Below, in pieces: positions 1,878-58,119 of a stretch of DNA of 64,000 nucleotides. Position numbers and translations under genes: made by a program. The notes beneath the pieces are model-generated. The model made no database searches. It was given only the letters and a program-made list of their open reading frames with translations, and was not told where the DNA came from. How positions within the stretch are numbered: position 1 is the stretch's first letter; every line of letters starts with the position of its first letter. The stretch lies in the sequence record LT960552.1; one strand, written 5' to 3'.

Positions 1878-1906
1878 TGGAACAGGAAAAAATGTTCTGG
1901 TATAAT
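1878..1906 (+). promoter_or_regulatory. TGRAAY-class extended -10 promoter
   Basis: TGGAAC-N17-TATAAT with TGG before the -10. Confidence 0.75.
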
Positions 1907-1910
1907 AGAG

Positions 1911-1942
1911 GCATCCTAATGAGAAGTTAGGGTGCTTTTTTT
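1911..1942 (+). terminator. Intrinsic terminator overlapping the predicted transcription start
   Basis: GCATCCTAA-N7-TTAGGGTGC followed by T7. Confidence 0.6.
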
Positions 1943-1958
1943 ATACATGGAGAACCAT

Positions 1959-2261
1959 ATGAGCAAGAAAACTGAATCTAAGATCGAAGCACATGATTTA
2001 AATGATGTACAACGTAAAAAATTGAAAGATGGTTTAAATTCCGCAGTAGTTCAACTGTCTCACCTAGATACTCTTAAAGAATCATATGCTGATTTTATGG
2101 ATACTTTAGCAGATGAAATTGGTCTTGACAAGGGTAAATTGAAAACAGCAGCAATGCGTATCTATAAACAAGATTTCTTTGATAAAGTACGTGCACAAGA
2201 TGAAGTAGAAACAATTTTAACCGTATCTGGTAATTTATCAACACCAATGGATGATGAATAA
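1959..2261 (+). CDS. DsbA-like double-stranded DNA-binding protein
   Basis: GGAG plus ATG at 1959. LADEIGLDKGKLKTAAMRIYKQDF...DEVETIL resembles T4 DsbA in size and pattern. Confidence 0.5.
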   Translation: MSKKTESKIEAHDLNDVQRKKLKDGLNSAVVQLSHLDTLKESYADFMDTLADEIGLDKGKLKTAAMRIYKQDFFDKVRAQDEVETILTVSGNLSTPMDDE

Positions 2262-2266
2262 AAAAA

Positions 2267-2296
2267 TAATGCCTCAATGATGAGGCATTAACTTTT
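2267..2296 (+). terminator. Hairpin/terminator
   Basis: TAATGCCTCA-ATGA-TGAGGCATTA, then ACTTTT. Confidence 0.55.
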
Positions 2297-2322
2297 AAGT
2301 ACGTGAATTATAAGGAGATAAG

Positions 2323-5300
2323 ATGTATATAGATGGATATATGGAACGAAAGAGGACAAAAGAAGTCCTTCACGTGGCTGAACGTGTTAATGGTAAACGT
2401 ATTTTGCGAGAAATTGAACCTGTTTATGAGTATTTTGTAGAATCTCCATCAGGAACATTCAAAACTATCAATGGTACTATGGCTGAAAAGTTTGAATTTA
2501 CTAGACATCATGAAATGAAGCAAACTATGGAGAAATTACCTAGTACTGCAAAGATTTATGAATCTGATTGTAATGTTACATTTAAAACTTTAGCAAAACA
2601 CTATATGGGTAAGCCATCTCCAGATTTAAATATAGTATTTTTCGATATCGAAACTGATTTTCATCCAAAATTTGGATATGCATCTCCAAGTGATCCTTTC
2701 AACCGAGTAACTGCAATTTCTTTATATCAAAGCTGGACAGGAAAGGACTATGTTCTTACAATGGCACCTTCTGATATGGATAATGTAGAAGCACAAGATA
2801 TTATCAACCGTTTGAACCACGAAACTAATGACCCTAACAGTACTGTATTGTTATATACAGATGAAGCTGAAATGTTTTCGGATTTTTTCGATTTGATTGA
2901 AGATTCTGACATTTTATCAGGATGGAATAGTGAATTTTATGATATTCCTTATATGGTTAATAGAACTCGTAAGATATTCAACGAAGCGACTTTAGCTAGA
3001 TGGTGCTTGTGGAATCGAAAGCCAAATGCTCGTGAAGCTGATATGTTTGGTAAAACTATTGTAACATATGACCTAGTTGGTCGTGTACACTTAGATTATC
3101 TTTCATTATATAAGAAACATGCTGGTCAAGTAGAACAATCTTATAAATTGGACTATATTGCTGAAAAAGTAACTGGTGAAAACAAAGTTTCATATGATGG
3201 TTCATTGGATAAGTTGTATCGAGAAGATTACTTAACGTTTTTACGTTATTCTAAACAAGATAGTATTCTATTAAAGAAAATAGATGATAAAATGGACTTC
3301 ATCAATCTACATAACCGATTGGCTCATAAAGAATGTGTACTTATTAGTACTACAATGGGTTCAGTGGCATTGATTGATACTGCTATCATTAATCTATCTC
3401 ATAAACGTGGTGAAGTAGTATTCAATAAACGAAAACTTGATGATGAAGATGAAAGTTATGATTATCAAGAATATGAAGATTATGATGATGAGGATGAAGA
3501 CGACGAACCAAAAGCAGGATCGAAAGCCGCAGGTGCATGGGTACAAGATCCAGTACTTGGATTAATTGACTTCTTGGGTTGTATTGACTTTAACTCATTA
3601 TATCCAACAGTATTACGTGCGTTAGGTATGAGTACTGAATGTATTCTTGGACAATTGCGTCAAACATATACTGATGCATATCTTGCTGAACGTATTGATG
3701 AACAACGAATGAAATTCCGTGGAAGAGGTAAATTTGAACCTAAATGGACTGAAGCATGGCATGGTTTATTTGCTAGTGTTGAATTTACAATGGTTCGTGA
3801 GAAATCAGACGATATTATCACTGTAGATTTGGAAGATGGTTCATCATTCCAAGCATCTGGTGCAGAATTATATGATATTATATTTGGTGAAGATAGTACT
3901 ATAGTATTAAGTGCTAATGGTACATTGTTTGATAAAACCAAGTATGGTGTAATTCCTGAAATTCTTACTATTTGGTATTCTGAACGTAAAGCTCAGCAAA
4001 AAATGGTAATCGATTACAAACATCTTGCAACGGATGGTTGGGAATTAGCAAGTGAAATTGTTTCTGAATTAGAAGAAGCATTAAAATTATTACAATATGG
4101 TAATAGTTTGCATAAAACGAACTTACATGAAGACGACCCTGTATATCTTATTAGATTAGCATTGGGATCTGGTGATATAAGTTCAGCAGCTAAGATCATT
4201 GCTGATAATGGTATGCGTTTTGAAGGTGGTAAGTTGTATTCACCTGAAGAAGATAAAAAGTACTGTAAAGTTCAATCATCTTTCTGGAAACAGAATCAAC
4301 AAATCCGTAAAATTTTGTTAAACTCACTATATGGTGCGTTATTGAACAAAGGTTCTAGATTCTTTGATAAGAGATTAGGTCAATCAGTAACTTTAACGGG
4401 TCGTAGTATGACTAAACACCTTGCAAGTAAGATTAATGAAGTATGTACTGAAAATTATGATCATGGTGGTGGTGTAGTTGTATATGGTGATACCGATTCT
4501 GTGTATTTTAGTGTAGCACATTATTATAAAGAGAATGATATTTCATTTGATTTATCTAAAGAAGAAGTAATTGAGCTATATCAAATGATTGGTGATACAG
4601 TAGGTTCATCATTCCCATCATTTATGGATGAAACCTTTAATACTGGTATAGATAATGGTAAAATTGTAGGGGCTGATCTGGAAATGGTAGGTTCTCGTGG
4701 TCTATTTTTGAAAAAGAAACGCTATGCTATACTAAAATATTGGGAAGATGGTTTCCGTTTAGATGTTGAAGGTAAACCTGGAAAAGTTAAAGCAATGGGT
4801 CTTGAAATTAAACGTTCAGATACACCAAAATACATTCAAAATTTCTTAGAAGACACATTAACATCATTGCTTGTTGGGTCAGAAGAAGATGTATTACGTG
4901 CGAAAGTTCGTGAATTCAAAAAGCTATTCAAAGATCGTCCTTCATATGAGAAAGGTCAACCTAAAACCGTTAAAAATTATTCTAATAAATTTAAAGAATA
5001 TGAAGAAACTGGTAAATGTAGAGTTGGACATGTTCTTGCAGCAATACAATGGAACAAATTACGTACTATATATGATGATATGACTGTTCCAGAAGCAACT
5101 GATGGAACTAAAGTTATAGTTTGTAAGTTAAAACCAAATCCATATGGTATTACATCGGTTGGCTATCCTATTGACTGTACCGAATATCTACCAGAATGGT
5201 TTTTATCATTACCATTTGATGACGATGATATGGAAAAAGCAGTACTAACTAAAAAATTAGGAAATATATTTGGTATTTTGGATATGGACTTGGCTATTGA

Positions 5301-5349
5301 TGAAAAAAGTTCAATTGAATTGAATACTGGTTTCCTAGAGTGGATATAA
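2323..5349 (+). CDS. gp43: Family B DNA polymerase (T4 gp43-like)
   Basis: Exonuclease motifs FFDIETD, GWNSEFYDIPY and YKLDYIA; polymerase motifs DFNSLYP, KILLNSLYG, YGDTDS, KKRYA and GLEIKRSD. Confidence 0.97.
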   Translation: MYIDGYMERKRTKEVLHVAERVNGKRILREIEPVYEYFVESPSGTFKTINGTMAEKFEFTRHHEMKQTMEKLPSTAKIYESDCNVTFKTLAKHYMGKPSPDLNIVFFDIETDFHPKFGYASPSDPFNRVTAISLYQSWTGKDYVLTMAPSDMDNVEAQDIINRLNHETNDPNSTVLLYTDEAEMFSDFFDLIEDSDILSGWNSEFYDIPYMVNRTRKIFNEATLARWCLWNRKPNAREADMFGKTIVTYDLVGRVHLDYLSLYKKHAGQVEQSYKLDYIAEKVTGENKVSYDGSLDKLYREDYLTFLRYSKQDSILLKKIDDKMDFINLHNRLAHKECVLISTTMGSVALIDTAIINLSHKRGEVVFNKRKLDDEDESYDYQEYEDYDDEDEDDEPKAGSKAAGAWVQDPVLGLIDFLGCIDFNSLYPTVLRALGMSTECILGQLRQTYTDAYLAERIDEQRMKFRGRGKFEPKWTEAWHGLFASVEFTMVREKSDDIITVDLEDGSSFQASGAELYDIIFGEDSTIVLSANGTLFDKTKYGVIPEILTIWYSERKAQQKMVIDYKHLATDGWELASEIVSELEEALKLLQYGNSLHKTNLHEDDPVYLIRLALGSGDISSAAKIIADNGMRFEGGKLYSPEEDKKYCKVQSSFWKQNQQIRKILLNSLYGALLNKGSRFFDKRLGQSVTLTGRSMTKHLASKINEVCTENYDHGGGVVVYGDTDSVYFSVAHYYKENDISFDLSKEEVIELYQMIGDTVGSSFPSFMDETFNTGIDNGKIVGADLEMVGSRGLFLKKKRYAILKYWEDGFRLDVEGKPGKVKAMGLEIKRSDTPKYIQNFLEDTLTSLLVGSEEDVLRAKVREFKKLFKDRPSYEKGQPKTVKNYSNKFKEYEETGKCRVGHVLAAIQWNKLRTIYDDMTVPEATDGTKVIVCKLKPNPYGITSVGYPIDCTEYLPEWFLSLPFDDDDMEKAVLTKKLGNIFGILDMDLAIDEKSSIELNTGFLEWI

Positions 5350-5813: not shown

Positions 5814-5819
5814 AATTTT

Positions 5820-5848
5820 TGAAACGTATACAATTAATCTGGTATAAT
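5820..5848 (+). promoter_or_regulatory. TGRAAY-class extended -10 promoter
   Basis: TGAAAC-N17-TATAAT with TGG. Confidence 0.75.
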
Positions 5849-5879: not shown

Positions 5880-6611
5880 ATGGAATTACGTGACGTACTA
5901 CGCGACCTAGTAACTACAACTGCTGGAATTGATTTTGATTGTATCGCTATTTCTAGTGAAGATCGGGGTCAAGGTCAACGAATTTATATGGAAGCATATA
6001 CTGGCGATAAAAACTTAGTTATGAGAGCATATACTAAGGAAGATGTACCTGAAGTTGTTGGGCGTTTTGGTATTGGTAATCTTGGAATGCTTCAAGGTCT
6101 ATTAAATCTAAATGTTTACAAATCAGAAAGTACTAAAATAAGTGTGAATGCAAAAGATGGTATTGTAAAAAGTCTTTCATTTGCTTCAGACGATGCAAAC
6201 ACCAACTATCTAGTAGTTGCAGAAAAATTTATTCCACCTCAACCACGTTTCACTGACAAACCATATGACGTACAGGTTACACCTAGTGCTTCAAAAGTCA
6301 ATGAGCTAAAAAGCTTCTCAGGAGTGTTTAAATCATTCACTGCTCACGTTACTCCCTTTACTGAGAACGGAAGTTTGTATTTTTACGTAGGTGAGAAGAA
6401 TAAAAATAACCATACAGGTACATTATTATTCTCTAAAACAGATGGTGAGTTATCTCAAGGTTATGGCTATCCTATTGAACGTGTTCTACAAGCATTGAAC
6501 CGCGTATCCAATGCTGAACAAAAATCAATTGGGATTACCAAAACTGGTATGTTTAATGTAACAGTAGATACTGGTATTGCAGTTTATAGCATCTATGTAA
6601 GTGGTTGCTAA
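5880..6611 (+). CDS. Probable DNA polymerase sliding clamp (gp45-like)
   Basis: 243 aa with an alternating alpha/beta pattern and GRFGIGNLGMLQGLL; follows the polymerase. Inferred from size and pattern. Confidence 0.5.
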   Translation: MELRDVLRDLVTTTAGIDFDCIAISSEDRGQGQRIYMEAYTGDKNLVMRAYTKEDVPEVVGRFGIGNLGMLQGLLNLNVYKSESTKISVNAKDGIVKSLSFASDDANTNYLVVAEKFIPPQPRFTDKPYDVQVTPSASKVNELKSFSGVFKSFTAHVTPFTENGSLYFYVGEKNKNNHTGTLLFSKTDGELSQGYGYPIERVLQALNRVSNAEQKSIGITKTGMFNVTVDTGIAVYSIYVSGC

Positions 6612-9913: not shown

Positions 9914-9942
9914 TGAAACCAACCCCAAAAATGTGGTATAAT
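9914..9942 (+). promoter_or_regulatory. TGRAAY-class extended -10 promoter
   Basis: TGAAAC-N17-TATAAT with TGTGG. Confidence 0.75.
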
Positions 9943-9954: not shown

Positions 9955-11220
<1,266 letters not shown>

Positions 11221-11221
<1 letters not shown>

Positions 11222-15374: not shown

Positions 15375-15398
15375 GTCTCCTTTACTCATATAAATAAA

Positions 15399-15427
15399 TG
15401 GAACATTATATTAAAATATGGTATAAT
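15399..15427 (+). promoter_or_regulatory. TGRAAY-class extended -10 promoter (distal, for gp32)
   Basis: TGGAAC-N17-TATAAT; a TATAAATA is also present at about 15388-15395. Confidence 0.75.
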
Positions 15428-15486: not shown

Positions 15487-15515
15487 TGAAACGTATCATG
15501 AAATTGTGGTATAAT
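15487..15515 (+). promoter_or_regulatory. TGRAAY-class extended -10 promoter (proximal, for gp32)
   Basis: TGAAAC-N17-TATAAT with TGTGG. Confidence 0.75.
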
Positions 15516-15596
15516 ATGAGTGTCAGAAGCAGGAAGCTACTGACACAATAAGCAAATAAACTAAGTAACAAAGAAACAAATGATAAGGAAATCAAA

Positions 15597-16649
15597 ATGG
15601 CAACATTAGCAGAAATTCGTGCTTTATTAAAAGCAGAACAAGACAAAGCAGAAGCAATCAAAAGTGGTACATTCTCAGGTGGTAATGGTCAACCGGATGC
15701 GTTTTTGGCATTCTGGAACATTCCAGAGAATCAAGATCTAAATCTACGTTTTCTACCAGATTTAGATATTAATAACCCTTACTTTTGGCGTGAACGTGAG
15801 ATGATTAATCTTGAGTTCAACGGAATTGTTGGTGGTCACACCGATAAAGTTAAGTTACAAGTACCTTGTAATGAAATGTGGGTTCCTAACTCTTGTCCTA
15901 TTCTAGCTGAAATTCGTCAGTGGTATAAAGCTGCAAACGAAACAGGTAACGAAGATCTAAAGAAACAAGCATCTAAGTACTGGAAAAAGAAATCTTATCT
16001 ATTCCAATGTTTAGTTGCACCAGGTTCTGTTGAAGTGAAAGACGACAATGCACCTGAAAATCCAATCCGTCGCGTTCTAGTGAACAAAGATTTGTTTGAA
16101 AAGATCAAATCAATTCTAATGAATCCAGACGTTGCTGAACTTCCAACTCATTATGATCATGGGCGTGACTTCCGTGTAATTAAGAGTAAAAATGCTGGTG
16201 GTTATAACAACTACGATGCATCACAGTTCAAATTCTCTGAGCGTCCACTAAATGGTGATGAACTTGCTGCGATTGAACAGTATGGCTTATTTGATCTAAG
16301 TGAATTTATGCCAAAACAACCAACACCAGAAGAATTAAATGCAATCCGTGAGATGTTTGAAGCATCTGCAAATGGTGAAGCATATGATCCTGCACGTTGG
16401 GCTGCTTATTATCGTCCAGCGGGTGTTCAAAAACCAGCAAATACTGGTTCATCTAATACTGCTGAAAGCACAACTACATCAGCTAAACCTACACAAACTG
16501 TAACTGCTCCAGTACAAACTACTGTAACAGAAACTGTAGTTGCTCAAGAAGCACCAGTTCAAGAGGCTGTAACAACAGCACCAACTGAGAGTAAGCAAAA
16601 ACTTTCTCCAGCAGAACTAGTAGCTAAACTAAAAGCTAAAGGTGGCTAA
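15597..16649 (+). CDS. gp32: Single-stranded DNA-binding protein (T4 gp32-like)
   Basis: FWNI...LRFLP...CPIL...YWKKKSYLFQ...DFRVIK...YNNYDASQF; heads the uvsX-uvsY-uvsW cluster. Confidence 0.85.
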   Translation: MATLAEIRALLKAEQDKAEAIKSGTFSGGNGQPDAFLAFWNIPENQDLNLRFLPDLDINNPYFWREREMINLEFNGIVGGHTDKVKLQVPCNEMWVPNSCPILAEIRQWYKAANETGNEDLKKQASKYWKKKSYLFQCLVAPGSVEVKDDNAPENPIRRVLVNKDLFEKIKSILMNPDVAELPTHYDHGRDFRVIKSKNAGGYNNYDASQFKFSERPLNGDELAAIEQYGLFDLSEFMPKQPTPEELNAIREMFEASANGEAYDPARWAAYYRPAGVQKPANTGSSNTAESTTTSAKPTQTVTAPVQTTVTETVVAQEAPVQEAVTTAPTESKQKLSPAELVAKLKAKGG

Positions 16650-16713: not shown

Positions 16714-17850
16714 ATGAAAAATATTTCTGCGGCATTCAGCAGCATTATAAAAAATAGTACAGCATCAGTTAAGAAAAATTCTGGTGTAAGTATGGGATTT
16801 CATGATCCAGACACTTGGATTAGTACTGGAAATCTAGCATTGAACTATCGCATCAGTGGTGATTTTAACAAAGGCATTCCCCTTGGTAAAGTAACTATGT
16901 TCGCTGGTGAATCTGGTTCAGGTAAATCATTCATCGTATCTGGTAACATTATTCGCGAAGCACAGAAACAAGGTATCTATGTAGTCTTGATTGACTCTGA
17001 AAATGCTCTTGATTCAGATTGGCTAGCCGCTCTTGGTGTAGATACATCTGATGAAAAATTACTTAAAATGAATATGGGTATGATTGGCGATGTTGCTAAA
17101 TTTACTTATGAATTCATTGAAGGTTATAGAAAAGAATATGAAAATGTACCACGTGAAGAACGTCAGAAAGTACTATTTGTTATAGATAGTATTGGTATGT
17201 TGAATACTGAAATTGCAAATGCACAGATGAAAGATGGTAATCTTAAAGGTGATATGGGTCATAAGCCTAAACAACTTAAAGCATTCATTACTAATTGTGT
17301 TAACAGTATCGGTGCATTAAATATGGGTATGGTTTGTGTAAATCACTCATATGAAAGCCAAGACATGTTCAGTCCAGACCCTAAAATAAGTGGTGGTTCT
17401 GGTTTAGTTTATGCTAGTAGTATTGTAGTTGCTATGGGTAAACTTAAATTAAAAGAAGATGAAGATGGTAACAAAACAACTGATGTAAATGGTATTCGTG
17501 CTAAATGTAAAGTTATGAAGACACGTTATAATAAACCATTTGAAGACGTTGAAATAAAAATTCCTTGGAATGAAGGTATGAATCCACGAAGTGGATTACT
17601 TGATATGTTTGAAAAATATGGTTTGATTACTAAATCAGGAAATCGACTACTTTATGTAGATATTGATACTGGTGAACAAATATTGCAATATCGCAAAGAT
17701 TGGGTATTGAATACTAATTCCTGTTTAGATTTAGTAATGGGACAATTTAAACGTCATCCATTAATTTCACATGTCACTGAAGAAGAAAAAGGTGATGAAG
17801 AATTTGGTACTGATGTTGATTTACCAACTGATGAGGTTAATGAGGGTTAA
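16714..17850 (+). CDS. uvsX: RecA/UvsX recombinase
   Basis: WISTG, GESGSGKS, IDSENA, VIDSIG and ISGGSG motifs. Confidence 0.95.
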   Translation: MKNISAAFSSIIKNSTASVKKNSGVSMGFHDPDTWISTGNLALNYRISGDFNKGIPLGKVTMFAGESGSGKSFIVSGNIIREAQKQGIYVVLIDSENALDSDWLAALGVDTSDEKLLKMNMGMIGDVAKFTYEFIEGYRKEYENVPREERQKVLFVIDSIGMLNTEIANAQMKDGNLKGDMGHKPKQLKAFITNCVNSIGALNMGMVCVNHSYESQDMFSPDPKISGGSGLVYASSIVVAMGKLKLKEDEDGNKTTDVNGIRAKCKVMKTRYNKPFEDVEIKIPWNEGMNPRSGLLDMFEKYGLITKSGNRLLYVDIDTGEQILQYRKDWVLNTNSCLDLVMGQFKRHPLISHVTEEEKGDEEFGTDVDLPTDEVNEG

Positions 17851-19233: not shown

Positions 19234-20718
19234 ATGAGTGGAATTTGTAAGTTAATACTTCAGGATGAAGTAAATTGTAAATTTGAGGGACTTGCCCCTA
19301 ATATTAGGCAAGAAATGATTCGTAAAGTATCATTTGTATTACCTTATGCTAAATTTACTCCTGCTGGAAAAATGGGCAGATGGGACGGTAAAGTTAATTT
19401 TATGAATATAGGTGGAAGCACTTATTATCATATGTTAGATCAACTTTTACCAATTCTTGAAAAGCATAATATAATGATTGAAATTGATGATCAACGTATT
19501 ACACATGATTTTGAGTTTGAGCCAATTGATGAAAATATTTTTGATTATGTAGAATTCCCTTCTGGACATCATATGGAAGGACAAAAAATTATTTTACGTG
19601 AACATCAAGTAAATGCAGTAAATTCATGTCTTGAAAATAGACATGGACTGCTATTAGCAAGTACAAGTTCAGGTAAAACATTAATTACTGCTGCAATGTC
19701 TAAAAGTGTTGAAAAATATGGTAGAAGTATTGTAATTGTTCCTAATAAAGATTTAGTACAACAAACTTACAATGATTATGTAATGGTCGGTTTAGATGCG
19801 GGTGTATTTTATGGTGATAAAAAAGAATTAAACCATCAACATACTATCACCACATGGCAATCGTTAAACTCTTTATGGAAAAAAACAAAAAAAGGTGAAA
19901 TTGCATTAACTGAACAAGATATTAGTGATTTTATCAATGGTGTAGTTGCTGTTGTAGTTGATGAAGCACATACTAGTGCGGCAGAAGCCTTACATGCAGT
20001 ACTAGGACAAGTAATGAAAAATATTCCATTACGTTGGGGATTAACTGGTACTATTCCTAAAGATCCAGTACTTGCAGCGAAAATAAAATGTAATGTTGGT
20101 GAAATTATATATACTATATCAGCAAAAGAGTTGCAAGATAAACAAATTCTTAGTACTTGTAATGTAAATTGCATTAGATTGAAAAGCTCTTTAAAATTTG
20201 GTAATTATCAAGAAGAATTAAAATATCTAGTAACTGACAAAACTAGAATGAAGTATATTGCATCAATAATTGCAGCTATTGCAGAATCTGGTAATACCTT
20301 AGTATTAGTTGATAGATTGGAAGCTGGTGAGTTATTGTGTGAATTCTTAGGTCTACCAACATCAGAATTCGTTAGAGGTGACACTAAGAAGAAAGATCGT
20401 GAAGCATCATATGGTGAAATTCGCTGGGCTGATAATAAAATACTTATTGCAACATATGGTGTGGCTAGTACTGGTATTAGTATTAGTCGTTTATATAATG
20501 TAGTACTTTTAGAACCTGGTAAAAGTTTTGTAAGAACTATTCAGAGTATAGGCCGTGGACTTCGACGTGCAGAAGACAAAGATCACGTAGAGATTTATGA
20601 CATTTCAGGTTTCAATAAGTTTAGTGCTAAGCATTCTCGTGAAAGAATGACGTACTATAAAGAAGTACAATATCCATATCACGAAATGATTGTGGAAAAT
20701 TGGGAAAATATGGAATGA
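19234..20718 (+). CDS. uvsW: UvsW-like SF2 DNA helicase
   Basis: LREHQ, STSSGKT, VDEAH, GLTGT and QSIGRGLR. Confidence 0.93.
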   Translation: MSGICKLILQDEVNCKFEGLAPNIRQEMIRKVSFVLPYAKFTPAGKMGRWDGKVNFMNIGGSTYYHMLDQLLPILEKHNIMIEIDDQRITHDFEFEPIDENIFDYVEFPSGHHMEGQKIILREHQVNAVNSCLENRHGLLLASTSSGKTLITAAMSKSVEKYGRSIVIVPNKDLVQQTYNDYVMVGLDAGVFYGDKKELNHQHTITTWQSLNSLWKKTKKGEIALTEQDISDFINGVVAVVVDEAHTSAAEALHAVLGQVMKNIPLRWGLTGTIPKDPVLAAKIKCNVGEIIYTISAKELQDKQILSTCNVNCIRLKSSLKFGNYQEELKYLVTDKTRMKYIASIIAAIAESGNTLVLVDRLEAGELLCEFLGLPTSEFVRGDTKKKDREASYGEIRWADNKILIATYGVASTGISISRLYNVVLLEPGKSFVRTIQSIGRGLRRAEDKDHVEIYDISGFNKFSAKHSRERMTYYKEVQYPYHEMIVENWENME

Positions 20719-20739
20719 AAAGATTTTTTATGATATAAT
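20711..20739 (+). promoter_or_regulatory. TGRAAY-class extended -10 promoter
   Basis: TGGAAT-N17-TATAAT with TGA. Confidence 0.65.
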
Positions 20740-25610: not shown

Positions 25611-25639
25611 TGGAATGAGCTAAAAAAATGTGGTATAAT
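25611..25639 (+). promoter_or_regulatory. TGRAAY-class extended -10 promoter
   Basis: TGGAAT-N17-TATAAT with TGTGG. Confidence 0.7.
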
Positions 25640-31716: not shown

Positions 31717-32052
31717 ATGAGGTTCAATCAGATAACCGAAGATGCACCTGGTAAAGATATACGGAATATGATTAGTACTATTGCATTATCATTAATTGCA
31801 ACAGGTAGAGAACAAATTAGTATACAATCATTGATTAATGAAATAAAAAAGCGTACTAATATTGATGTTCCATATAATGTAATGATGGATATTCTTAATG
31901 AACTTCCATTTGTACAAGATGCAAATTCTGATATGGTAAACTTACAAGGTACTGATACTTCACCTGATGGTGATAGTATTGAATCACCTGAAGAACAAGT
32001 AACTGATATGGCAACAAAAGCAGCATCTGCAAATTTAAAACAAGATATTTGA
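31717..32052 (+). CDS. Hypothetical head-associated protein
   Basis: N-terminus MRFNQITED resembles capsid-targeting leaders. Confidence 0.5.
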   Translation: MRFNQITEDAPGKDIRNMISTIALSLIATGREQISIQSLINEIKKRTNIDVPYNVMMDILNELPFVQDANSDMVNLQGTDTSPDGDSIESPEEQVTDMATKAASANLKQDI

Positions 32053-32078
32053 AACAAACGAAAAACATGTGCTATAAT
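32050..32078 (+). promoter_or_regulatory. TGRAAY-class extended -10 promoter
   Basis: TGAAAC-N17-TATAAT with TGTGC. Confidence 0.75.
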
Positions 32079-38330: not shown

Positions 38331-38355
38331 AAAAGGACGCTTGATGCGTCCTTTT
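38331..38355. terminator. Terminator (AAGGACGC family)
   Basis: AAAAGGACGC-TTGAT-GCGTCCTTTT. Confidence 0.7.
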
Positions 38356-38370
38356 GCATGGAGAAATTAA

Positions 38371-38565
38371 ATGGATTTTCAAAATGATAGTATTGATGTA
38401 TTTGAGTTTGACCAAGAATGGATATATACTATAACATTTATTGGTGGTTCACAAATAACTGGAGCAGTTATTAAAGCATATGAAAATGGTATAGTACTAA
38501 ATTGTGGGACACATGTACCTACTGCCAGCATACTATATTTTAAACCATTATCTTTAATTCAATAA
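38371..38565 (+). CDS. Small hypothetical protein (Sm/LSm-like beta pattern possible)
   Basis: GGAG RBS, 64 aa. Confidence 0.6.
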   Translation: MDFQNDSIDVFEFDQEWIYTITFIGGSQITGAVIKAYENGIVLNCGTHVPTASILYFKPLSLIQ

Positions 38566-38567: not shown

Positions 38568-38596
38568 TGAAACAGAAAAAAAAATTATGGTATAAT
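38568..38596 (+). promoter_or_regulatory. TGRAAY-class extended -10 promoter
   Basis: TGAAAC-N17-TATAAT with TGG. Confidence 0.75.
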
Positions 38597-41437: not shown

Positions 41438-41466
41438 TGAAACGGATGAAAACAATATGGTATAAT
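41438..41466 (+). promoter_or_regulatory. TGRAAY-class extended -10 promoter
   Basis: TGAAAC-N17-TATAAT with TGG. Confidence 0.75.
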
Positions 41467-42817: not shown

Positions 42818-42821
<4 letters not shown>

Positions 42822-44158
42822 GTATTACGCTTACGGATAAGCAACAATCTATTTTTGATGATTTGATTTATAAAATAAACAACACTGGTGGTAGAACCGA
42901 GGCTGTAATAGTTGGTTATGCTGGAACAGGGAAAAGTACTTTAGTTTCTAGTATTATTGAAAATATATACAAAGAATATAATATTGCAGTAACTTCACCT
43001 ACTCATAAAGCAAATTCAGTACTTCGTGATATGTTATATGATGTTGGATTAGATAAAGATGATGCATTAATAAGTACTATTCATTCATTTTTAGGATTGA
43101 AATTAGTATATGAAAAAAATCGTCAAGTACTTAAACATGATCCACGATCTGCAAATAGTACTGCGTATGTTGATGTATTATTTGTTGATGAATGTAGTAT
43201 GATTTCTGATGAAATGTATAATCATATTTTGAGTCAAATCCATCGTGTACGTAGGGCAGTAATTTTTATTGGAGATTCATGTCAATTGCCTCCAGTTGAA
43301 GCTGAAGGTACAACTGGTGAGACTAGATTGAGTCCAACATTTGATATTTCATTAAAGTATGAGTTAACCGAAGTATTACGACAAGCGTTAGACAATCCAA
43401 TTATAAGTGTTGCTACGATGATACGTGAATGTATAGGTACAAAGAAAGATCCATTACTTATTTTAAATAATTTAGATGGAATGGAAACAATTACTTCAAT
43501 TGATGATGAAATGTTATTTTTAGATGTATATAAAGAATATATTAATGAGTGTAGTGGTGTATCTAATAAAATTTATGATTTTGTTCAACAAAATAAAATA
43601 ATTGCATATACTAATTATAGAGTTAATTTTGCTAATATGTATATAAGAAATGAAGTTTTTCCAGAATATACAAATTCTGAATTTGTTTGCGGTGAACCGA
43701 TTATATTTGAAACAACTACAGACAATTGTCCATATATGGTACAACAAATAATTAAATGTCCAGAAATTAGATCTGAATCATTTTTAGGTATTGATTGTTG
43801 GCAGTTTAAATTACCAAATGGTAATTATATTTGGGGAGTTGGCCCATATTCCAGATTAAAATTAGAAGAACATCTTGAGGATTTAGTATATAAGATTGAA
43901 AATAAAGTTGAAAATCCATTAACTAAAAAACTCTATATGTGGCAGGATTATTATATTATCAAAAACAAGATAAATGTAATCAACTATCCTTATGCAACTA
44001 CTGCACATAAATCACAGGGAAGTACTTTTAATAATATATGGTTTGATACGGATTTCATTGAACGAATTGCAAACAATGATACAAAGTGTCGAATTTTATA
44101 TACTGCATTAACCCGCCCACGATATAGTGTTATGTTAAGAAAAAATGGAAGGTTCTAA
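42818..44158 (+). CDS. dda: Dda-like SF1B DNA helicase
   Basis: GYAGTGKS, SPTHKA, VDECSM, GDSCQLPPV, YATTAHKSQGST and YTALTR. Confidence 0.92.
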
Positions 44159-45158: not shown

Positions 45159-45186
45159 TTGACAAATATTATATTTGTGTTATCAT
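45159..45186 (+). promoter_or_regulatory. Sigma70-type promoter for infC
   Basis: TTGACA-N16-TATCAT with an extended TG. Confidence 0.6.
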
Positions 45187-45225: not shown

Positions 45226-45732
45226 ATGAAATCTGTTATTGCCAATGATCAAATTACTGCAAAGAGCGTTCGCCTCGTTGATGAAAGTTCTAGTACAGTG
45301 ATGGCAATTAATGCCGCATTAGATCTTGCTTACAGTAAAGAGATGGATTTAATTCAAGTCTCAGATCAAGATGTACCTGTAGTAAAAATTGCTAATTTGA
45401 ATAAGTACTTGTACGATCAAAAACAAGCAGAAAAAGAATCTAAAAAGAAACAACGCCAAAATTCTACACAAGTAAAAGAGGTTCAGTTTTCTTTTGGAAC
45501 ACAGGAGCATGATTTAAATACTAAAGCTAAATCGGCACAGAAATTCATTTCTGAGGGCAAGCAAGTACGAGTCGTGATGAAAATCCAAGGTCGTACTAAT
45601 TCCAATCCTAACATTCTTAAACAAAATACTGATTGTATGGGTGACTTCGTTACTCGTTTAGGTGATGTTGATTTTGTACAAAACATTGCAGTACAGGGTA
45701 ATAATGTTACCTGCACAATTAAAGCGAAGTAA
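45226..45732 (+). CDS. infC: Translation initiation factor IF-3
   Basis: IANDQITAKSVRLVD, ALDLA...MDLIQVS...PVVKIA..NKYLYDQK, KEVQF...EHDLNTK...KFISEGKQVRVVM..QGR. Confidence 0.92.
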   Translation: MKSVIANDQITAKSVRLVDESSSTVMAINAALDLAYSKEMDLIQVSDQDVPVVKIANLNKYLYDQKQAEKESKKKQRQNSTQVKEVQFSFGTQEHDLNTKAKSAQKFISEGKQVRVVMKIQGRTNSNPNILKQNTDCMGDFVTRLGDVDFVQNIAVQGNNVTCTIKAK

Positions 45733-45784: not shown

Positions 45785-46312
45785 ATGAAGAATATTGAAC
45801 GTAAAGTGTTCTCCCTACCTAATATTGAAGTAGTGAAAGCATCTTATAAAAATTCGGTTTATTATATCGCTGGCTCAAATGATATTACTGAATATGTTAA
45901 AATTATTAAAGCAACACAAGATTTAGATGATCTCGACGCCATTACTTATGGTTTAACTCTTTATTTGCGTGATCATCCAGAAAATAGTCAATTGGCAGTA
46001 CCGTTATTTGATGTAGTACTATTGAATGATTCAAAGACAAGTTTTGATTATGTTATTCATATTGTTAATGATCTTTTCCGTAAAGACATTACTGAATCTC
46101 ATCAAATTGCTGATCTAATTCACTATGATGGAGCAGCAACAGTTGGTACATATCCATATGAACTAGCACATACATTTGCGTGTATGGTTGAAACTGCAAA
46201 TACACAAACGCATCAAGAGTTGCAGACTGATATTGTGCCATCAGCAAAGGTTGTTGACCCACTTTCATTGATTGAGCAATTAATTCGCCGCGATCATCCA
46301 GAAGATATTTAA
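45785..46312 (+). CDS. clpS: ClpS-like protease adaptor with an N-terminal extension
   Basis: FDVVLLNDSKTSFDYVIHIV...LIHYDGAATVGTYPYELA matches the ClpS core. Confidence 0.8.
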   Translation: MKNIERKVFSLPNIEVVKASYKNSVYYIAGSNDITEYVKIIKATQDLDDLDAITYGLTLYLRDHPENSQLAVPLFDVVLLNDSKTSFDYVIHIVNDLFRKDITESHQIADLIHYDGAATVGTYPYELAHTFACMVETANTQTHQELQTDIVPSAKVVDPLSLIEQLIRRDHPEDI

Positions 46313-51311: not shown

Positions 51312-51343
51312 ATAACGATGCAGAAATGCATCGTTATTTTTTT
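51312..51343 (+). terminator. Intrinsic terminator
   Basis: ATAACGATGCA-GAAA-TGCATCGTTAT followed by a T run. Confidence 0.8.
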
Positions 51344-51371
51344 GGAACAAAGAAACAAATTATGCTATAAT
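51343..51371 (+). promoter_or_regulatory. TGRAAY-class extended -10 promoter
   Basis: TGGAAC-N17-TATAAT with TGC. Confidence 0.75.
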
Positions 51372-51404: not shown

Positions 51405-53393
51405 ATGGCAAAGGAAAAGAAAAGTTCTGTTCTCGCTGAACATGGTGTTCAACAATTAACTGAATATCAACATGCACGTATCCGTACTGAAATGTACTTA
51501 GGATCAAAATCAGAACATGAACAACCAGTTCTTCTCTTTAGTGAAGATGGTTATACTGTGCAAAATTTAGGTTGGGTTCCTGCCCTACTAACTTCATTCC
51601 GTGAAATCGTGGATAACTCATTAGATGAATTTGTTAAAGCTGGAACAAAAGATCCAGTACTAAAAGTATCATATAATGAAAATGAACTTGAATTCGAAAT
51701 TAGCGATAATGGTCGTGGTATTCCGATTGATTACGTACCTGAAACTCTTAAACATGTTTGTACAATGGTACTAACAGAGATGAAAACTGGTCGTAACTTC
51801 AATGATGATGAACGTAATAATGTTGTTGGTATGAATGGTCTTGGTGGTTCAGTTGTTATGATTGTTAGTGAAAAAGCTGAGATCGAAATACATAGAACCG
51901 GAAAACCATATAAGACTGATAAATCAAATACTGAATATGATGGTATGTATAAATTCACACAGAAGTTTACAGAAGGAACTCAAATGTTCCCTGAACTTGG
52001 TATTGAAGAACCAAATATTCGTAAAGTGAAAGCAGATAAAACTGGAACAACAGTTAGATTCAAAATAAGCAAAGAAGTATTCAAAGTACATACATTACCT
52101 ATTCAGTTAGTGTATAGCATTCTTAAAGAAGTTGCGGCAGCTAACCCAACATATAAAATCTTTTTGAATGATCAACGCATTACAGTTAATAAGAAAGGTT
52201 TATTCTCTGCTGCAAAAAACACAATGATTCTCAAAGTTGATGATAATGAGACTGGACTAGATAGTACTTTCTACATTGTACCAAACGTAGTTGAGGGTCT
52301 AAGCAAGAACTTACATATGCAAGGTCTTGTTAATAATGCTCCATCATTAGAAGGTGGAACACACTTAGATACATTCCAACAAAAATTTGCATTAGGTGTT
52401 ATTAATGCATTGGATAGAGTACCTAAAAATAGAAAACGCAATTTAAAACCTAATCGTTCTGATATCGAAGAAGGATTGTTGATTTATAACATCACAAAGA
52501 TGAATACCCCAACTTTCAACTCTCAAATCAAAACGAAGCTAACTAATGAAAATGTCATCAAGCCAGTGCAAAATGCAATGAGTGATGATTTCTTTAATGA
52601 ATTAGTGAAGAAAAACACTGATTGGATTGAAGAAATTTATACTAGATGTGCTGAGCGTACAAATAAAAAAGATGCTGATGAAGATCGTAAAATGGCAAAA
52701 CGACTATTAAAAGGAAAAGTTGCTAAATTACGAGATGTAAATGATACTAAACCAAGAAGCGAATGTATTCTTTTAATTGCTGAAGGTGATTCAGCAGTAA
52801 GTTCAATGACAGCAGCTAGAAATTCTTCTATTCATGGGATTTTACCTTTGCGTGGTAAAATACAAAACGTAAATGGAAGAGAGAAAACTAAAGATCTTAT
52901 GGGTACTGCGGATAAACCATCAGCAATTCATGACATTATGGCATCTCTTAATATTGTTCCTGGAGAAAAAGCTATCAGATCCAATATGAACTTTGGTAAG
53001 TTATATATTTGTGCCGATGAAGATGAAGATGGTAAAAATATTGGTGCGTTAGTAGTAAATTTCTTTTATAAGTTCTGGCCTGAATTATTTGAAGATACTT
53101 CAAATCCATTCATTTACATTTTCAAAACACCATTTATTATTTTGGAAAAAGGTAAAGAATCAAAGTACTATTATGGTCACAACGTTCATGAATACAATCC
53201 AGATGATTGGAAAGGATGGAAAGCGACTCGTGCTAAAGGTCTTGGGACTCTTGAAGTTTCAAACTTTAGAGATGCACTTGCTAATGGTGTTGCAATAGCA
53301 ATAACCGATGATGGGTCATTAGCAGAAACATTGGATTTAATTTTCAATAAAGACCGTGCTGATGATCGTAAAGAATGGACTAAAGAAGACTAA
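51405..53393 (+). CDS. gp39: Type IIA topoisomerase large subunit (gp39+gp60 in one chain; GyrB/ParE-like)
   Basis: EIVDNSLDE, DNGRGIP, GMNGLG, AEGDSA, PLRGKI, DEDEDG and KGLG. Confidence 0.95.
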   Translation: MAKEKKSSVLAEHGVQQLTEYQHARIRTEMYLGSKSEHEQPVLLFSEDGYTVQNLGWVPALLTSFREIVDNSLDEFVKAGTKDPVLKVSYNENELEFEISDNGRGIPIDYVPETLKHVCTMVLTEMKTGRNFNDDERNNVVGMNGLGGSVVMIVSEKAEIEIHRTGKPYKTDKSNTEYDGMYKFTQKFTEGTQMFPELGIEEPNIRKVKADKTGTTVRFKISKEVFKVHTLPIQLVYSILKEVAAANPTYKIFLNDQRITVNKKGLFSAAKNTMILKVDDNETGLDSTFYIVPNVVEGLSKNLHMQGLVNNAPSLEGGTHLDTFQQKFALGVINALDRVPKNRKRNLKPNRSDIEEGLLIYNITKMNTPTFNSQIKTKLTNENVIKPVQNAMSDDFFNELVKKNTDWIEEIYTRCAERTNKKDADEDRKMAKRLLKGKVAKLRDVNDTKPRSECILLIAEGDSAVSSMTAARNSSIHGILPLRGKIQNVNGREKTKDLMGTADKPSAIHDIMASLNIVPGEKAIRSNMNFGKLYICADEDEDGKNIGALVVNFFYKFWPELFEDTSNPFIYIFKTPFIILEKGKESKYYYGHNVHEYNPDDWKGWKATRAKGLGTLEVSNFRDALANGVAIAITDDGSLAETLDLIFNKDRADDRKEWTKED

Positions 53394-54857: not shown

Positions 54858-54864
54858 TTTATAT

Positions 54865-54914
54865 AAGGACGCATAATGCGTCCTTTATTTTTAATCGTAT
54901 ACATATAATAAATA
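54865..54914 (+). terminator. Terminator (AAGGACGC family) followed by late promoter TAAATA
   Basis: AAGGACGCA-TAA-TGCGTCCTT; TAAATA at 54909-54914. Confidence 0.7.
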
Positions 54915-54950
54915 CCACAAAGCTTTTTATGTTTTTGGAGATAATAATAT

Positions 54951-57311
54951 ATGGCGAATTTCGAACCCAAATGGGATTTGATAGCTGATACCAATTCGAT
55001 TAAAGAAGGACAGACTACTTATTTTAGATTACGAATTTCTAAAAGTCAACTTATTTCACCTAACGATGAATATGTACTTGATGATGACCAATATCTTGAA
55101 TTTACATTTAATATTGTAGGTGCAGGAGAAACATTAGAAGAAAGAGATTTTAACGTATCTATAGGTGAAAGTACTTCAGAATTAATTCCTATTGGAGAAG
55201 CAGGAACAGGCATCCCACACATTCAGGGAACGCACGTAGTAAAATTAAGTAGAAAAGATTTCCAATTGAGTTCAAGTATAACCTTTATTGATGCATTCTT
55301 TTTTAAAATAGAATGTCCACAAGACGGAACATGGGATGGACCAGAATCATTAACATTTAATATTGATAGCATAAATGAAATAACATTATTAGATGGACAA
55401 ATTGCCAATACAGTTCCGAGTGGAATTGTGGGAATTAGTACTCAAATTTTAAATTATAATACTGAAGATGAAGTTTGGGTTACTCCCAACTTAACAACAC
55501 ATGGTGATAATCTATATACTATTGGTGGTATTGGATATGGATCTGAAAGTAGATTATATATTCAAGCATTTGGAAGAAGTGAAACTATAAATGGGATTAC
55601 TAATATTTTTATGCCAGCATATAAAATTGAAGAAATCACTATAGCTGATATTCCCAATGAACACATAACTGGTTCAGGTACTATTTTTATACCTGTAGGA
55701 GTTGAGGAAGAATCTAATGTTTCAATTTTGGATACTATAGGTAATACAGTACAATCAGGATTAAAATTTAATGCTAACGGTCAGTTAGTACAAACATTAA
55801 TATATGATTCTGAACCAATAGATACTTATTTTAAAGCTTCAATTGTGTCTATTACTAGTTATTATAATACACCACAAGATGCATATTTCATTGGTAAAAG
55901 ATTTAGAGCATACCAAACATGGGTTTGTCCAACTGATATTACAGATTTTTATGGTGCAGTAAAGCCAAATCATATGTATCAACTTAAAGATACTAAAGTA
56001 TATCCTTATGTAGTAAAAGAAATTATTATTGAAGGAAGTACTAAAATATTATTTGAGGAAGATAAGTGGTATGATTTGGGATTATATAATGAATCATTAG
56101 GTACTGGTATTATTGGTTCAGAAAGAATGTTTCGTGTTGTTGTAAATGATAATACTGGTACAGATATTTCTTTTGAAACTGATACAAATCTAGGTGAAAT
56201 TCATGTTGGTGAATATTTTGGACATTCAGTATATCCTAAAATAATCGCTAGTGGTTCAGATTTAATAACATACCACATTGATTCAACTACTTCACCAAAT
56301 GATATTACAAAATATGGATTAGATTTAACAGCAGATGGAATTGTCATTGGTGAAGCATACGCATTAAGTACTGATTTTACTGCTAATGATGATATACCAT
56401 TACAGTTTGATGTAGTCGCTACTAGTAAACTTGGTAAATCATTAACAAAAAGATTTAGATTAAGAATTATTAGAGGATTAGGACAAAACTATTTACATGC
56501 AGATGTGTACCCATCGTTGACATTAGAACGTTCTTGGTTTAAAATGATAAGTTCAACTACATTTAGTAGAGCATTTTATTATAGGGCATCTGACCCACGA
56601 TATGGAGTAAAAACTATACCTCGTATTTTGTTAAAAGAGAACTTCGTTGATCCAACTAAAAATTGGGAAGGGATTAAACAAACGATTCTCAATCTCAGGG
56701 CTGGAATAGTTGATACAGTTCATGGTTCACCAACACCAGATGGTTCATTTAGATTAGTACTAGGAAATTATAAAATACGTTCAGCTCTTGACAATCAAGG
56801 AAATGTGTTGTATGATGTACTGTACAGAGAGCTACATGAAGAAGGTGTACAAGTTAATTTAAGTTTAAATCCATTGAAATATACTGATTATTCTACCTCT
56901 ATAATTTCTGAGATTTTTGGATTAAGACAAAATATTTTTAATATTATAGGTGAAGATACCGTAAACTTATTAACAGATCCAACTGATTTAAATAATCGTG
57001 GTATTGTCGTTGAACCAATCAATGGAATATCTGTCGAAATGTTAGATACAGTTCCTCGTTACATGAATCATCCATATATCGAAGATAACATTAAACCTAT
57101 GTATTTCCCATGTATACCAGTTGCATACTTGCAACCAGGGCAAGGTGAAATATTGTTTAATACGATGGTACAAAATAATGAACATGGTACATTGCTCAAT
57201 ACTGAATTTGAAGTATCTGGTGTTGAATTTAAATACTATACTGAAAGTACTGACAAATATGTTCAAGAAAACTTTACGGCATCATTAAAAGTGCCTAATC
57301 TATTTCAATAA
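54951..57311 (+). CDS. Large virion structural protein (baseplate/wedge-like)
   Basis: 786 aa, beta-rich, late promoter, GGAG RBS. Confidence 0.55.
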   Translation: MANFEPKWDLIADTNSIKEGQTTYFRLRISKSQLISPNDEYVLDDDQYLEFTFNIVGAGETLEERDFNVSIGESTSELIPIGEAGTGIPHIQGTHVVKLSRKDFQLSSSITFIDAFFFKIECPQDGTWDGPESLTFNIDSINEITLLDGQIANTVPSGIVGISTQILNYNTEDEVWVTPNLTTHGDNLYTIGGIGYGSESRLYIQAFGRSETINGITNIFMPAYKIEEITIADIPNEHITGSGTIFIPVGVEEESNVSILDTIGNTVQSGLKFNANGQLVQTLIYDSEPIDTYFKASIVSITSYYNTPQDAYFIGKRFRAYQTWVCPTDITDFYGAVKPNHMYQLKDTKVYPYVVKEIIIEGSTKILFEEDKWYDLGLYNESLGTGIIGSERMFRVVVNDNTGTDISFETDTNLGEIHVGEYFGHSVYPKIIASGSDLITYHIDSTTSPNDITKYGLDLTADGIVIGEAYALSTDFTANDDIPLQFDVVATSKLGKSLTKRFRLRIIRGLGQNYLHADVYPSLTLERSWFKMISSTTFSRAFYYRASDPRYGVKTIPRILLKENFVDPTKNWEGIKQTILNLRAGIVDTVHGSPTPDGSFRLVLGNYKIRSALDNQGNVLYDVLYRELHEEGVQVNLSLNPLKYTDYSTSIISEIFGLRQNIFNIIGEDTVNLLTDPTDLNNRGIVVEPINGISVEMLDTVPRYMNHPYIEDNIKPMYFPCIPVAYLQPGQGEILFNTMVQNNEHGTLLNTEFEVSGVEFKYYTESTDKYVQENFTASLKVPNLFQ

Positions 57312-57320
57312 GGAAAATTT

Positions 57321-57623
57321 ATGTTTCATCCATTTTTCGACCCATCATCTTTAAGTGATAAAGAACTATATGATAAAATAACTGAAGTTTCTGTTAGAAT
57401 CTCTGCTGCTAGAACATCAGGGATTCAATATGAAATTATACAATCAATGTACACATTAATTCACGCATGTGAAGAAGAGATTAGAACTAGGCAAGCTCAC
57501 AAAGATCTTGAGAGTGCTTCTAAGGAAGATAATTGTGTATTTGATTCAGATAGTTATTTAAATGACAAAGATGATAAAAATAATGAAAATACAAAAAAAC
57601 AGAACTATAAGCGAGGATGGTGA
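57321..57623 (+). CDS. Hypothetical protein
   Basis: AAGGA RBS; MFHPF start. Confidence 0.65.
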   Translation: MFHPFFDPSSLSDKELYDKITEVSVRISAARTSGIQYEIIQSMYTLIHACEEEIRTRQAHKDLESASKEDNCVFDSDSYLNDKDDKNNENTKKQNYKRGW

Positions 57624-58101
57624 TGTTCGTTTAGATCTGAATGCTGTTGTTTATGCTATAAACTGCGGCACAGACATTACTTATATCCAGCTTAATGAGC
57701 AAGATGAAGTTGAACGATTGAAGTTCAATGATAATTGTAAAAAATTTGGACTTACTGAACGTATGCTAGATTATAAAATAGAACATGATAAAAATCATGA
57801 ACTATGGAGATATGATCCAGTATATGATAAAATCAACTTAGAAGATTATTTCCTTTCTTTATGTAGTACTGATGTTGAACGTGATCGAGTACTATATGAA
57901 TTAGGATTGTATGAAAATTATAATATGACCAAACTATTAAGATGTATGATATGGTTGGTAGATTATCTTGACGAACATAATATTTTTTGGGGATTAGGTC
58001 GTGGAAGTTCAGTAAGCAGCTTTTGTTTGTATTTGATTGGATTACATTTGGTTGATTCAGTGAAATACGAATTAGATGTGAACGAATTTTTGAAATGGTA
58101 A
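57562..58101 (+). CDS. DnaE (Pol III alpha)-like fragment, N-half
   Basis: DRVLYEL...NIFWGLGRGSSVSSFCLYLIGLHLVDSVKYELDVNEFLK aligns with DnaE ERLETEL...[39 protein letters not shown]; the true start may be 57571 or 57583. Confidence 0.85.
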   Translation: MTKMIKIMKIQKNRTISEDGDVRLDLNAVVYAINCGTDITYIQLNEQDEVERLKFNDNCKKFGLTERMLDYKIEHDKNHELWRYDPVYDKINLEDYFLSLCSTDVERDRVLYELGLYENYNMTKLLRCMIWLVDYLDEHNIFWGLGRGSSVSSFCLYLIGLHLVDSVKYELDVNEFLKW

Positions 58102-58119
58102 AAAAAATTATGGTATAAT
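58091..58119 (+). promoter_or_regulatory. TGRAAY-class extended -10 promoter
   Basis: TGAAAT-N17-TATAAT with TGG. Confidence 0.7.

Follow-up and report, generated by a model that had tools for sequence, protein, structure and literature searches.

The promoters analysed here lie in a stretch of 64,000 nucleotides (nt), the window, which covers positions 186,001-250,000 of the 352.6-kb sequence record LT960552.1, the genome of Yersinia phage fHe-Yen9-03, a Rak2-like jumbo myovirus of the genus Eneladusvirus. The DNA polymerase gene in the window is 100% identical to that of this phage. Twelve sites in this window are real promoters of one sharply defined class, termed class 2, in which the hexamer TGRAAY (R, A or G; Y, C or T) stands at -35, exactly 17 nt before a TATAAT -10 element that is extended by TGn. 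Comparison between Rak2-like phages suggests that both halves of these promoters are probably read by the phage's own sigma70-family factor, which is encoded outside the window.

A pattern search for TGRAAY-N17-TATAAT returned exactly 12 matches in the window, all on the + strand, against a chance expectation of 0.25 ± 0.48, and none of 100 dinucleotide-preserving shuffles of the window reached 12. These are the same twelve sites that had been listed in an initial annotation made from the letters of the window, and its description of them as always TGn-extended was borne out, the TG at -15/-14 being present in 12/12 (Table 1). The T directly before the hexamer occurs in only six of them, so that the element is not simply TTGAAA. 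A + strand gene follows every site, with predicted start-to-ATG distances of 8-163 nt overall; if transcription is assumed to start 7 nt after the -10, the leader measures 23-27 nt at eight of the twelve. The sites at 20711 and 32050 overlap the final few bases of the preceding gene. Generic -35/-10 signals are already marked at most of the checked sites by the automatic annotation of the record, in inconsistent registers.

The extent of the class was determined in the sister phage fHe-Yen9-04 (354,378 bp; 98% identical to fHe-Yen9-03), to which the genome-wide results below refer unless stated otherwise. There the exact pattern has 39 forward-strand and two reverse-strand occurrences, and the reversed control pattern has one. 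The genome-wide scan that the initial annotation had proposed was carried out with a weight matrix, built from 37 TGn-bearing sites and then used to rescan the genome: 39 sites have scores higher than 20, all of them on the + strand, and no site falls between 10 and 20. Given the lack of scores between 10 and 20, the class has no grey zone. The matrix-found sites, 12 of which fall in the window, carry a TATAAT -10 in 37/39 cases and TGn in 39/39. Spacing is equally strict, with 39 + strand sites at N17 versus 0-3 at N15, N16, N18 or N19. Within the box, T1, G2, A4 and A5 are invariant (39/39), and position 6 is C in 34 of the 37 seed sites. The core motif had been given correctly, but the conserved element extends further than was first described, aaAaA..TGRAAC(R)...AAAAAAtT(R)TGG-TATAAT-ATa, whose additional parts are an A-rich stretch from -42 to -38, an A-tract in the spacer, T at -17, R at -16 and ATA after TATAAT.

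The genes behind the window sites form a replication and nucleotide-metabolism set, and the gene names first proposed for them were broadly right. However, class-2 sites are not confined to replication genes, although the replication region has more than its share of them. Elsewhere in the genome they stand before genes for a NadR-like cytidylyltransferase/Nudix protein, an RNA-binding protein, a Nudix hydrolase, an ATPase and a Lon-like protease, and before a gp55-like late sigma gene (PHROG 'sigma factor for late transcription', E = 6e-154). At six sites a tRNA gene (Leu, Arg, CTA-anticodon, Asn, Pro and Met) begins 5-23 nt after the end of the -10, and these cases are the best sign that can be had from sequence of real start sites. 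The CTA-anticodon tRNA, of amber-suppressor type and labelled tRNA-Pyl by ARAGORN, occupies positions 292524-292599, 17 nt behind the -10 of the class-2 promoter at 292478. The class, with its 39 sites and no grey zone, provides a precise annotation rule for operon starts and tRNA transcription units.

The motif is not new, contrary to the first impression of a new third class. In Pectobacterium phage CBB, RpoD-like promoters with UP elements were reported for the presumed early region, together with a 'Promoter 1' or 'divergent RpoD-like promoter' that combines a classic -10 with TGAAACG at -35 and that was also reported for Cronobacter phage GAP32 (Buttimer et al., 2017, PMC5259590; Abbasifar et al., 2014). 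Of eighteen examples found by MEME, 11 precede DNA-synthesis genes and one precedes a gp55-like gene, and Table S6 of that paper lists the same hexamers and 29-mers as found here, for example TGAAATGGTAAAAAAAATTATGGTATAAT (PMC5259590). The 29-nt architecture of Promoter 1, TG(A/G)AA(C/T)-N14-TGn-TATAAT, is identical to that of class 2, and the CBB site at 243,482, TGAAATGGTAAAAAAAATTATGGTATAAT, agrees letter for letter with the window site at 58091. Hexamer (12/12 in the window and 39/39 in the genome), fixed N17 spacing with TGn and TATAAT, and placement are all shared; the sites of CBB and of the two Yen9 phages occupy orthologous positions, several of them near-identical in sequence and genome order, and stand before non-structural genes of the same direction. 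The promoter class is already published for sister phages, and its occurrence in the Yersinia phage is an annotation-level result. The present counts differ in that CBB holds 37 exact matches, against the 18 sites in the paper, which names no reader, leaves tRNA promoters unremarked and makes no comparison between genera (PMC5259590). We found no paper in the literature that tests these promoters or the phage sigma; neither promoters nor a sigma are analysed in the RaK2 genome paper, and the PA5oct paper reports only TTGAC/TATAATA promoters and nothing decisive on a sigma.

Besides fHe-Yen9-04 and the CBB set, four more complete genomes were compared, those of phages 121Q, Munch, RaK2 and XaC1. 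Every compared genome has a second class of fixed geometry with a box of its own. On the + strand, TGRAAY-N17 accounts for 39 sites in fHe-Yen9-04 and 37 in CBB; 121Q has 13 sites of TGRGAY-N17; Munch has 29 of cTTGGGACAAA (TGRGAY-N18, with N17 in three more); RaK2 has 21 of tTGAACAAA (TGAAYA-N16/17); and XaC1 has 37-39 of TGAAAC(R)-N17-TATACT, with rTGTyC before it. In XaC1 the -10 half has changed too, to CTATACT in 37/39 sites, with the TG shifted. A TGnTATAAT scan of XaC1 revealed no class because its -10 differs, and the class emerged from the upstream regions of orthologous genes. Sites of the form TTGACN-N16-18 are present in every compared genome but XaC1. The box is swapped at orthologous genes (Table 1), among them gp55: the gp55-like gene lies directly behind a class-2 site with the local box in four genera.

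The hosts of the Yen9 phages, CBB, Munch, 121Q and RaK2 all belong to the Enterobacterales, among which sigma70 region 4.2 should be essentially identical. Since the box changes between phages of such similar hosts, its reader would be encoded by the phage and evolve with it; this is the simplest reading of the concerted swap, and it suggests a phage-encoded protein. The change in the -10 half of XaC1, moreover, fits a single protein that reads both halves, that is, a sigma. By the same reasoning, the resemblance to sigma32 and sigmaE -35 elements pointed out in the initial annotation has no support. The idea that the box is read by sigmaE, sigma32 or a similar alternative sigma of the host can draw on the likeness of GGAAC and TGAAA to the -35 elements of sigmaE and sigma32, respectively, but it is highly implausible: the -10 is TATAAT in 12/12 window sites, with neither TCTGA nor CCCCATnT, sigmas of groups 3 and 4 are not known to read TRTG, and the box varies between phages of enterobacterial hosts that are expected to share those sigmas.

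A candidate reader was found in the genome search for sigma-like or MotA/AsiA-like genes that had also been suggested at the outset. A Pfam Sigma70_r2 match at 332,340-332,513 of fHe-Yen9-04 lies within a frame of 339 codons (330 amino acids from the database start), gene g498, outside the window. The protein matches both Sigma70_r2 and Sigma70_r3, and it aligns to the RpoD C-terminal profile (E = 3e-26) over positions 2-204 of 238. Among solved structures, SigA, RpoD and RpoS are its best relatives, with alignment to about residue 298. The profile alignment to a bacterial primary sigma spans region 2.1 to the first helix of the region 4.2 helix-turn-helix (HTH) and ends at residue 291, just before the recognition helix. 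Beyond this point, a profile of the last 90 residues has sigma region-4 chains as 38 of its 39 matches in the PDB, weak ones (E = 0.005-0.9) that cover positions 9-51 and sometimes reach 64. An AlphaFold2 model made from a 37-sequence alignment has a mean predicted local distance difference test (pLDDT) score of 71 and a predicted template-modelling (pTM) score of 0.35, with pLDDT values of 82-91 in the C-terminal domain, where it places helices at 252-260, 265-275 and 285-291, a short hairpin at 294-300 and a long helix at 304-325. These predicted secondary-structure elements and the weak PDB profile matches are the basis on which we assign to the C-terminal domain a probable four-helix, sigma-4-like arrangement with an enlarged turn. 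Region 4 would thus be present but altered, with its first three helices kept and a recognition helix predicted by AlphaFold2.

This sigma is conserved in all Rak2-like genera, with strong divergence. Identity to the fHe-Yen9-04 protein is 87% in Serratia phage BF and the Erwinia pEa_SNUABM phages (Eneladusvirus), 78% in GAP32 and CBB, 71% in XbC2, 44% in Munch, about 40% in XaC1, 35% in 121Q and 30% in RaK2. TTGACA-type promoters stand before the gene at ~330.7-331.4 kb, where that class is densest, and the RpoD-like promoter Porf_510 of CBB is found ~2 kb upstream of the sigma gene of that phage, in front of a gene for an HTH regulator. We also observed that a class-2 promoter is situated directly downstream of the sigma gene in three lineages (position 334669 in fHe-Yen9-04, 90290 in 121Q and 9883 in a metagenomic contig).

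Class 2 is one of three promoter classes, next to the TTGACA class and TATAAATA, and the distinction drawn between them in the initial annotation is upheld. Sixty TTGACA-type sites lie within 160 nt of + strand gene starts and are concentrated at both genome ends; they have spacers of 16-18 nt, TATAAT as the -10 in only 16/60 and TG in 25/60. A scan with the generic sigma70 consensus was uninformative (103 matches versus 107 expected). TATAAATA is found at 26 places, 20 of which are intergenic. Class 2 would be the second, delayed-early or middle, transcription class, a timing that is suggested by gene arrangement: the sigma gene lies in the TTGACA-rich region, and the gp55-like gene lies behind a class-2 site. 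In the resulting scheme, the host sigma70 holoenzyme would first transcribe the TTGACA-type early region, which contains g498. The phage sigma would then bind host core RNA polymerase and read TGRAAC at -35 by means of its altered region 4.2 and T(R)TGn-TATAAT by means of regions 2 and 3. Class 2 would thereby be switched on, and with it the replication and nucleotide genes, the tRNA genes and the gp55-like late sigma gene, whose product could subsequently open the TATAAATA late class.

Several observations weigh against assigning class 2 to this sigma. First, Pfam Sigma70_r4 has no match to it or to any of 70 family members. Second, its region 2.3-3.0, which reads FSTYATTAIRQHMYRN...LPEHLSM, retains the IRQ motif and a His in alignment with H455 of sigma70, but has T and A at the positions of W433 and W434, the melting Trp pair, and a changed residue at that of E458, by which sigma70 reads the extended -10 TG. 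Because of these replacements, canonical reading of TRTG by the phage sigma is not evident. Third, the recognition helix and the box do not provide independent evidence by their co-variation, and we rejected them as such. SK(A/P)TLSRRY pairs with TGRAAC (Yen9, CBB and XaC1) and S(R/H)..(L/I)HR(C/K/R)Y with TGRGAC (Munch and 121Q), but in the sigma tree all S-R-R sigmas form one clade (support 98/99), so that the link between helix and box amounts to a single evolutionary event, inseparable from shared descent. In a prospective check of whether helix class predicts the box, with one site on each of four metagenomic contigs, three contigs fit, namely, an S-class contig with TGAAAC-N17, another with TGAAAT-N17 just after the sigma gene, and an H-class contig with TGGGAT-N17; the fourth, also H-class, holds an ambiguous TGAAAT site alone. 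Fourth, searches for transcript data yielded no RNA-seq of this phage or its relatives, and searches of sequencing runs for RNA evidence returned only fragments of wastewater metagenome contigs, one 'RNA' run amounting to three 151-nt fragments inside gp32, with no ends. Fifth, a perfect extended -10 is the best element for host sigma70 in the absence of any -35, and since TRTGnTATAAT is its optimum, the host holoenzyme alone may fire class-2 sites to some extent. Lastly, Pfam searches would miss an activator, or a protein that remodels sigma, if it is small and evolves fast.

The loss of the Trp pair can also be read in another way. Alternative sigmas with reduced melting capacity reportedly demand near-consensus promoters, and a sigma without the pair would account for the stringency of class 2, with its invariant -10 and no weak members.

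An arrangement that accommodates some of these observations is sigma appropriation, in which host sigma70 reads the extended -10 and a phage DNA-binding protein reads the -35 box, alone or alongside a protein that remodels region 4 of sigma70. Such a system would be like MotA/AsiA of phage T4 in function while unrelated in sequence, and the phage sigma would serve something else. The -10 half is indeed the exact sigma70 optimum, TRTGnTATAAT; neither the Trp pair nor a counterpart of E458 is present in the phage sigma; concerted, genus-specific changes of the box suit any phage-encoded reader, be it a sigma or not; and T4 middle promoters likewise retain the -10 of sigma70 and drive replication genes and tRNAs. 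However, the genome search for MotA_activ, MotCF and AsiA (PF09114, PF09158 and PF09010) gave no Pfam match at E <= 1 in the 354-kb genome, although small divergent analogues could escape it, and the MotA-box core TGCTT occurs in 0/39 sites, in agreement with the early remark that the element is not a MotA box. The box lies at the position of sigma region 4 with a 17-bp spacer, rather than at -30 with a 12-bp spacer, and the accompanying change of the -10 half in XaC1 is easier to understand if one protein reads both halves. Moreover, the three classes recognised match three sigmas (host sigma70, the phage sigma and gp55), a count that comes without systematic motif discovery in the remaining intergenic regions, and appropriation leaves the phage sigma without a target. 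We therefore consider appropriation unlikely. An activator, a remodelled sigma region 4 and a phage sigma factor had all been put forward initially; among these, the sigma70-family gene outside the window and the concerted change of the box favour the phage sigma.

It could also be argued that these are ordinary extended -10 promoters of host sigma70, active from the start of infection without any phage factor, with the hexamer as a weak -35. The TATAAT -10 and a spacer within 17 ± 1 bp are those of a canonical sigma70 promoter, extended -10 promoters need no -35, and the automatic annotation of the record treats most of the checked sites as generic -35/-10 signals. The hexamer itself matches TTGACA at only 2-3 of six positions in the 17-bp register, which is not a canonical sigma70 -35; in the alternative register, nTGRAA with an 18-bp spacer, it matches at 3-5 of six, but just 14/39 sites have at n the T needed for a full TTG. 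A dispensable -35 is incompatible with four invariant positions, a nearly invariant C6 and a fixed spacer. In addition, good TTGACA hexamers with flexible spacing are used elsewhere in the same genome, and the box varies between phages whose hosts share sigma70. Unaided host sigma70 is thus a rather improbable reader, and recognition of both halves by the phage sigma is the explanation that we favour.

If the phage sigma is the reader, it would be a rare full-length sigma70 relative with a re-specified -35 reader. Whether this extends to the whole group is, in our judgement, evenly balanced: Rak2-like phages may hold a natural series of sigma/-35 pairs that work on one enterobacterial core polymerase, built on a group-1-like sigma with a rebuilt region 4.2 (a long hairpin turn and a new recognition helix), whose specificity drifts by genus (TGRAAC, TGRGAC and TTGAACA, and in XaC1 the -10 half too) while ~20-40 promoters per genome are retuned in concert, and in which loss of Trp433/434 would explain the need for a near-perfect -10. 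Such diverged pairs of sigma and box, all working with one host core enzyme, would be useful for studying how region 4 specificity evolves and as a source of orthogonal expression tools, and would help to read the early-middle-late programme of a large, poorly annotated group of phages used in phage therapy and biocontrol.

The features of the window are collected in Table 1. When its coordinates are transferred to fHe-Yen9-04, the offset changes from 186,424 to 187,209, as the latter has ~785 bp extra within ~33000-38500 of the window.

Table 1. Promoters in the window, with the genes that follow them and the boxes found at orthologous places in other Rak2-like phages. Coordinates are window positions.
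Feature	Position	Strand	Downstream genes and context	Orthologous sites
Class-2 promoter, TGGAAC-N17-TATAAT, TGG-extended	1878..1906	+	Small open reading frame (ORF) 1959-2261, then family-B DNA polymerase 2323-5349	Munch TGGGAC-N18, same place
Class-2 promoter, TGAAAC-N17-TATAAT	5820..5848	+	ORF 5880-6611, PHROG family without known function; clamp according to the initial annotation	121Q TGAGAC; RaK2 TGAACA; Munch TGGGAC
Class-2 promoter	9914..9942	+	ORF 9974, then 5'-3' exonuclease/RNase H-like gene 10235-11221	
Late-type TATAAATA	15389-15396		Abuts the promoter at 15399	
Class-2 promoter, upstream of tandem pair	15399..15427	+	gp32 15597-16649, UvsX 16714-17850	Tandem pair kept in RaK2 and Munch
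Class-2 promoter, downstream of tandem pair	15487..15515	+	gp32	Tandem pair kept in RaK2 and Munch
Class-2 promoter, TGGAAT, TGA-extended	20711..20739	+	Overlaps the end of the UvsW gene; ORFs from 20773 downstream (DnaE-fragment operon according to the initial annotation)	
Class-2 promoter, TGGAAT	25611..25639	+	Primase 25671-26717, DnaB-like helicase 26725-28206	121Q TGAGAC; Munch TGGGAT
Class-2 promoter	32050..32078	+	PD-(D/E)XK nuclease 32093-32794; leader of just 8 nt	121Q TGAGAC; Munch TGAGAC; RaK2 TGAACA
Class-2 promoter	38568..38596	+	Small ORFs, then MazG-like gene 39242-39952	
Class-2 promoter	41438..41466	+	Membrane-protein ORF, DHFR 41870, RNase H 42384, Dda-like helicase 42818-44158	
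Canonical promoter, TTGACA-N16-TATCAT	45159-45186		Before the IF3 gene	
Class-2 promoter	51343..51371	+	Immediately 3' of a terminator-like hairpin; topoisomerase II 51405-53393 downstream	121Q TGAGAC; Munch TGAGAC
Class-2 promoter, TGAAAT	58091..58119	+	ORF 58151, then gp44-like clamp loader 59184-60161	121Q retains TGAAAT
Canonical TTGACA promoter	63005		Right end of the window	
Canonical TTGACA promoter	63635		Right end of the window	

The region upstream of gp32 stacks three signals, TATAAATA and the two tandem class-2 promoters. From the second of these, the 75-nt leader of gp32 (15522-15596) starts with a 5' hairpin, GUCAG...CUGAC (z = -3.3), and continues as an unstructured sequence rich in A, an arrangement that recalls the translational operator of T4 gene 32. 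A short ORF with a match to the DNA polymerase III alpha (DnaE) domain adjoins the clamp-loader operon (57562-58101; ORFs from 20773), consistent with the DnaE fragments remarked upon in the initial annotation. The canonical TTGACA promoters were likewise located where that annotation had put them, at infC and at the right end. The first of them precedes IF3, with both Pfam IF3 domains, and a ClpS-like adaptor (45226-45732 and 45785-46312), a unit that constitutes an early-type island inside the replication region. Outside the window, an early-promoter cassette is repeated at ~4524, 9792, 11230, 11637, 12152, 333610 and 342159 of fHe-Yen9-04. In this cassette the -35, TTGAC(T/A), is one arm of a GC-rich hairpin, GGGGTTGAC-TTCG-GTTAACCCC, after which come a T-run and TATACT, and a terminator and the next promoter are thereby fused into a unit of ~37 nt.

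Among known systems, the extended -10 promoters of sigma70 and SigA, for which TRTGnTATAAT is the reported sequence, share with class 2 the T at -17, the R at -16, the TG at -15/-14 and TATAAT. They typically have no conserved -35, whereas class 2 has an invariant hexamer, other than TTGACA, at a fixed distance. T4 middle promoters, which combine a MotA box with a sigma70 -10 and depend on sigma appropriation by MotA and AsiA, resemble class 2 in several respects: their sigma70-type -10 is often TGn-extended, a phage-specific element replaces the -35, they serve replication and nucleotide genes as well as tRNAs, and they feed a gp55-dependent late class. However, the T4 box, (a/t)(a/t)TGCTT(t/c)A, is centred at -30, ~12 bp from the -10, while TGRAAC stands at -35 with a fixed 17 bp, and T4 is not known to have a full-length sigma70-family gene, in contrast with the Rak2-like phage studied here. 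The sigmas of SPO1 (gp28), phiEco32 (gp36) and phage 7-11 (PMC8948821) offer a parallel for the mode of action proposed here, in that an early phage sigma redirects the host core to a stringent, phage-specific promoter class. Those sigmas are short, extracytoplasmic function (ECF)-like or highly divergent, and read unrelated promoter elements, whereas the phage sigma described here is group-1/2-like, aligns to RpoD and SigA from region 1.2 to region 4.1, and is paired, on our reading, with a promoter that keeps the consensus sigma70 -10.

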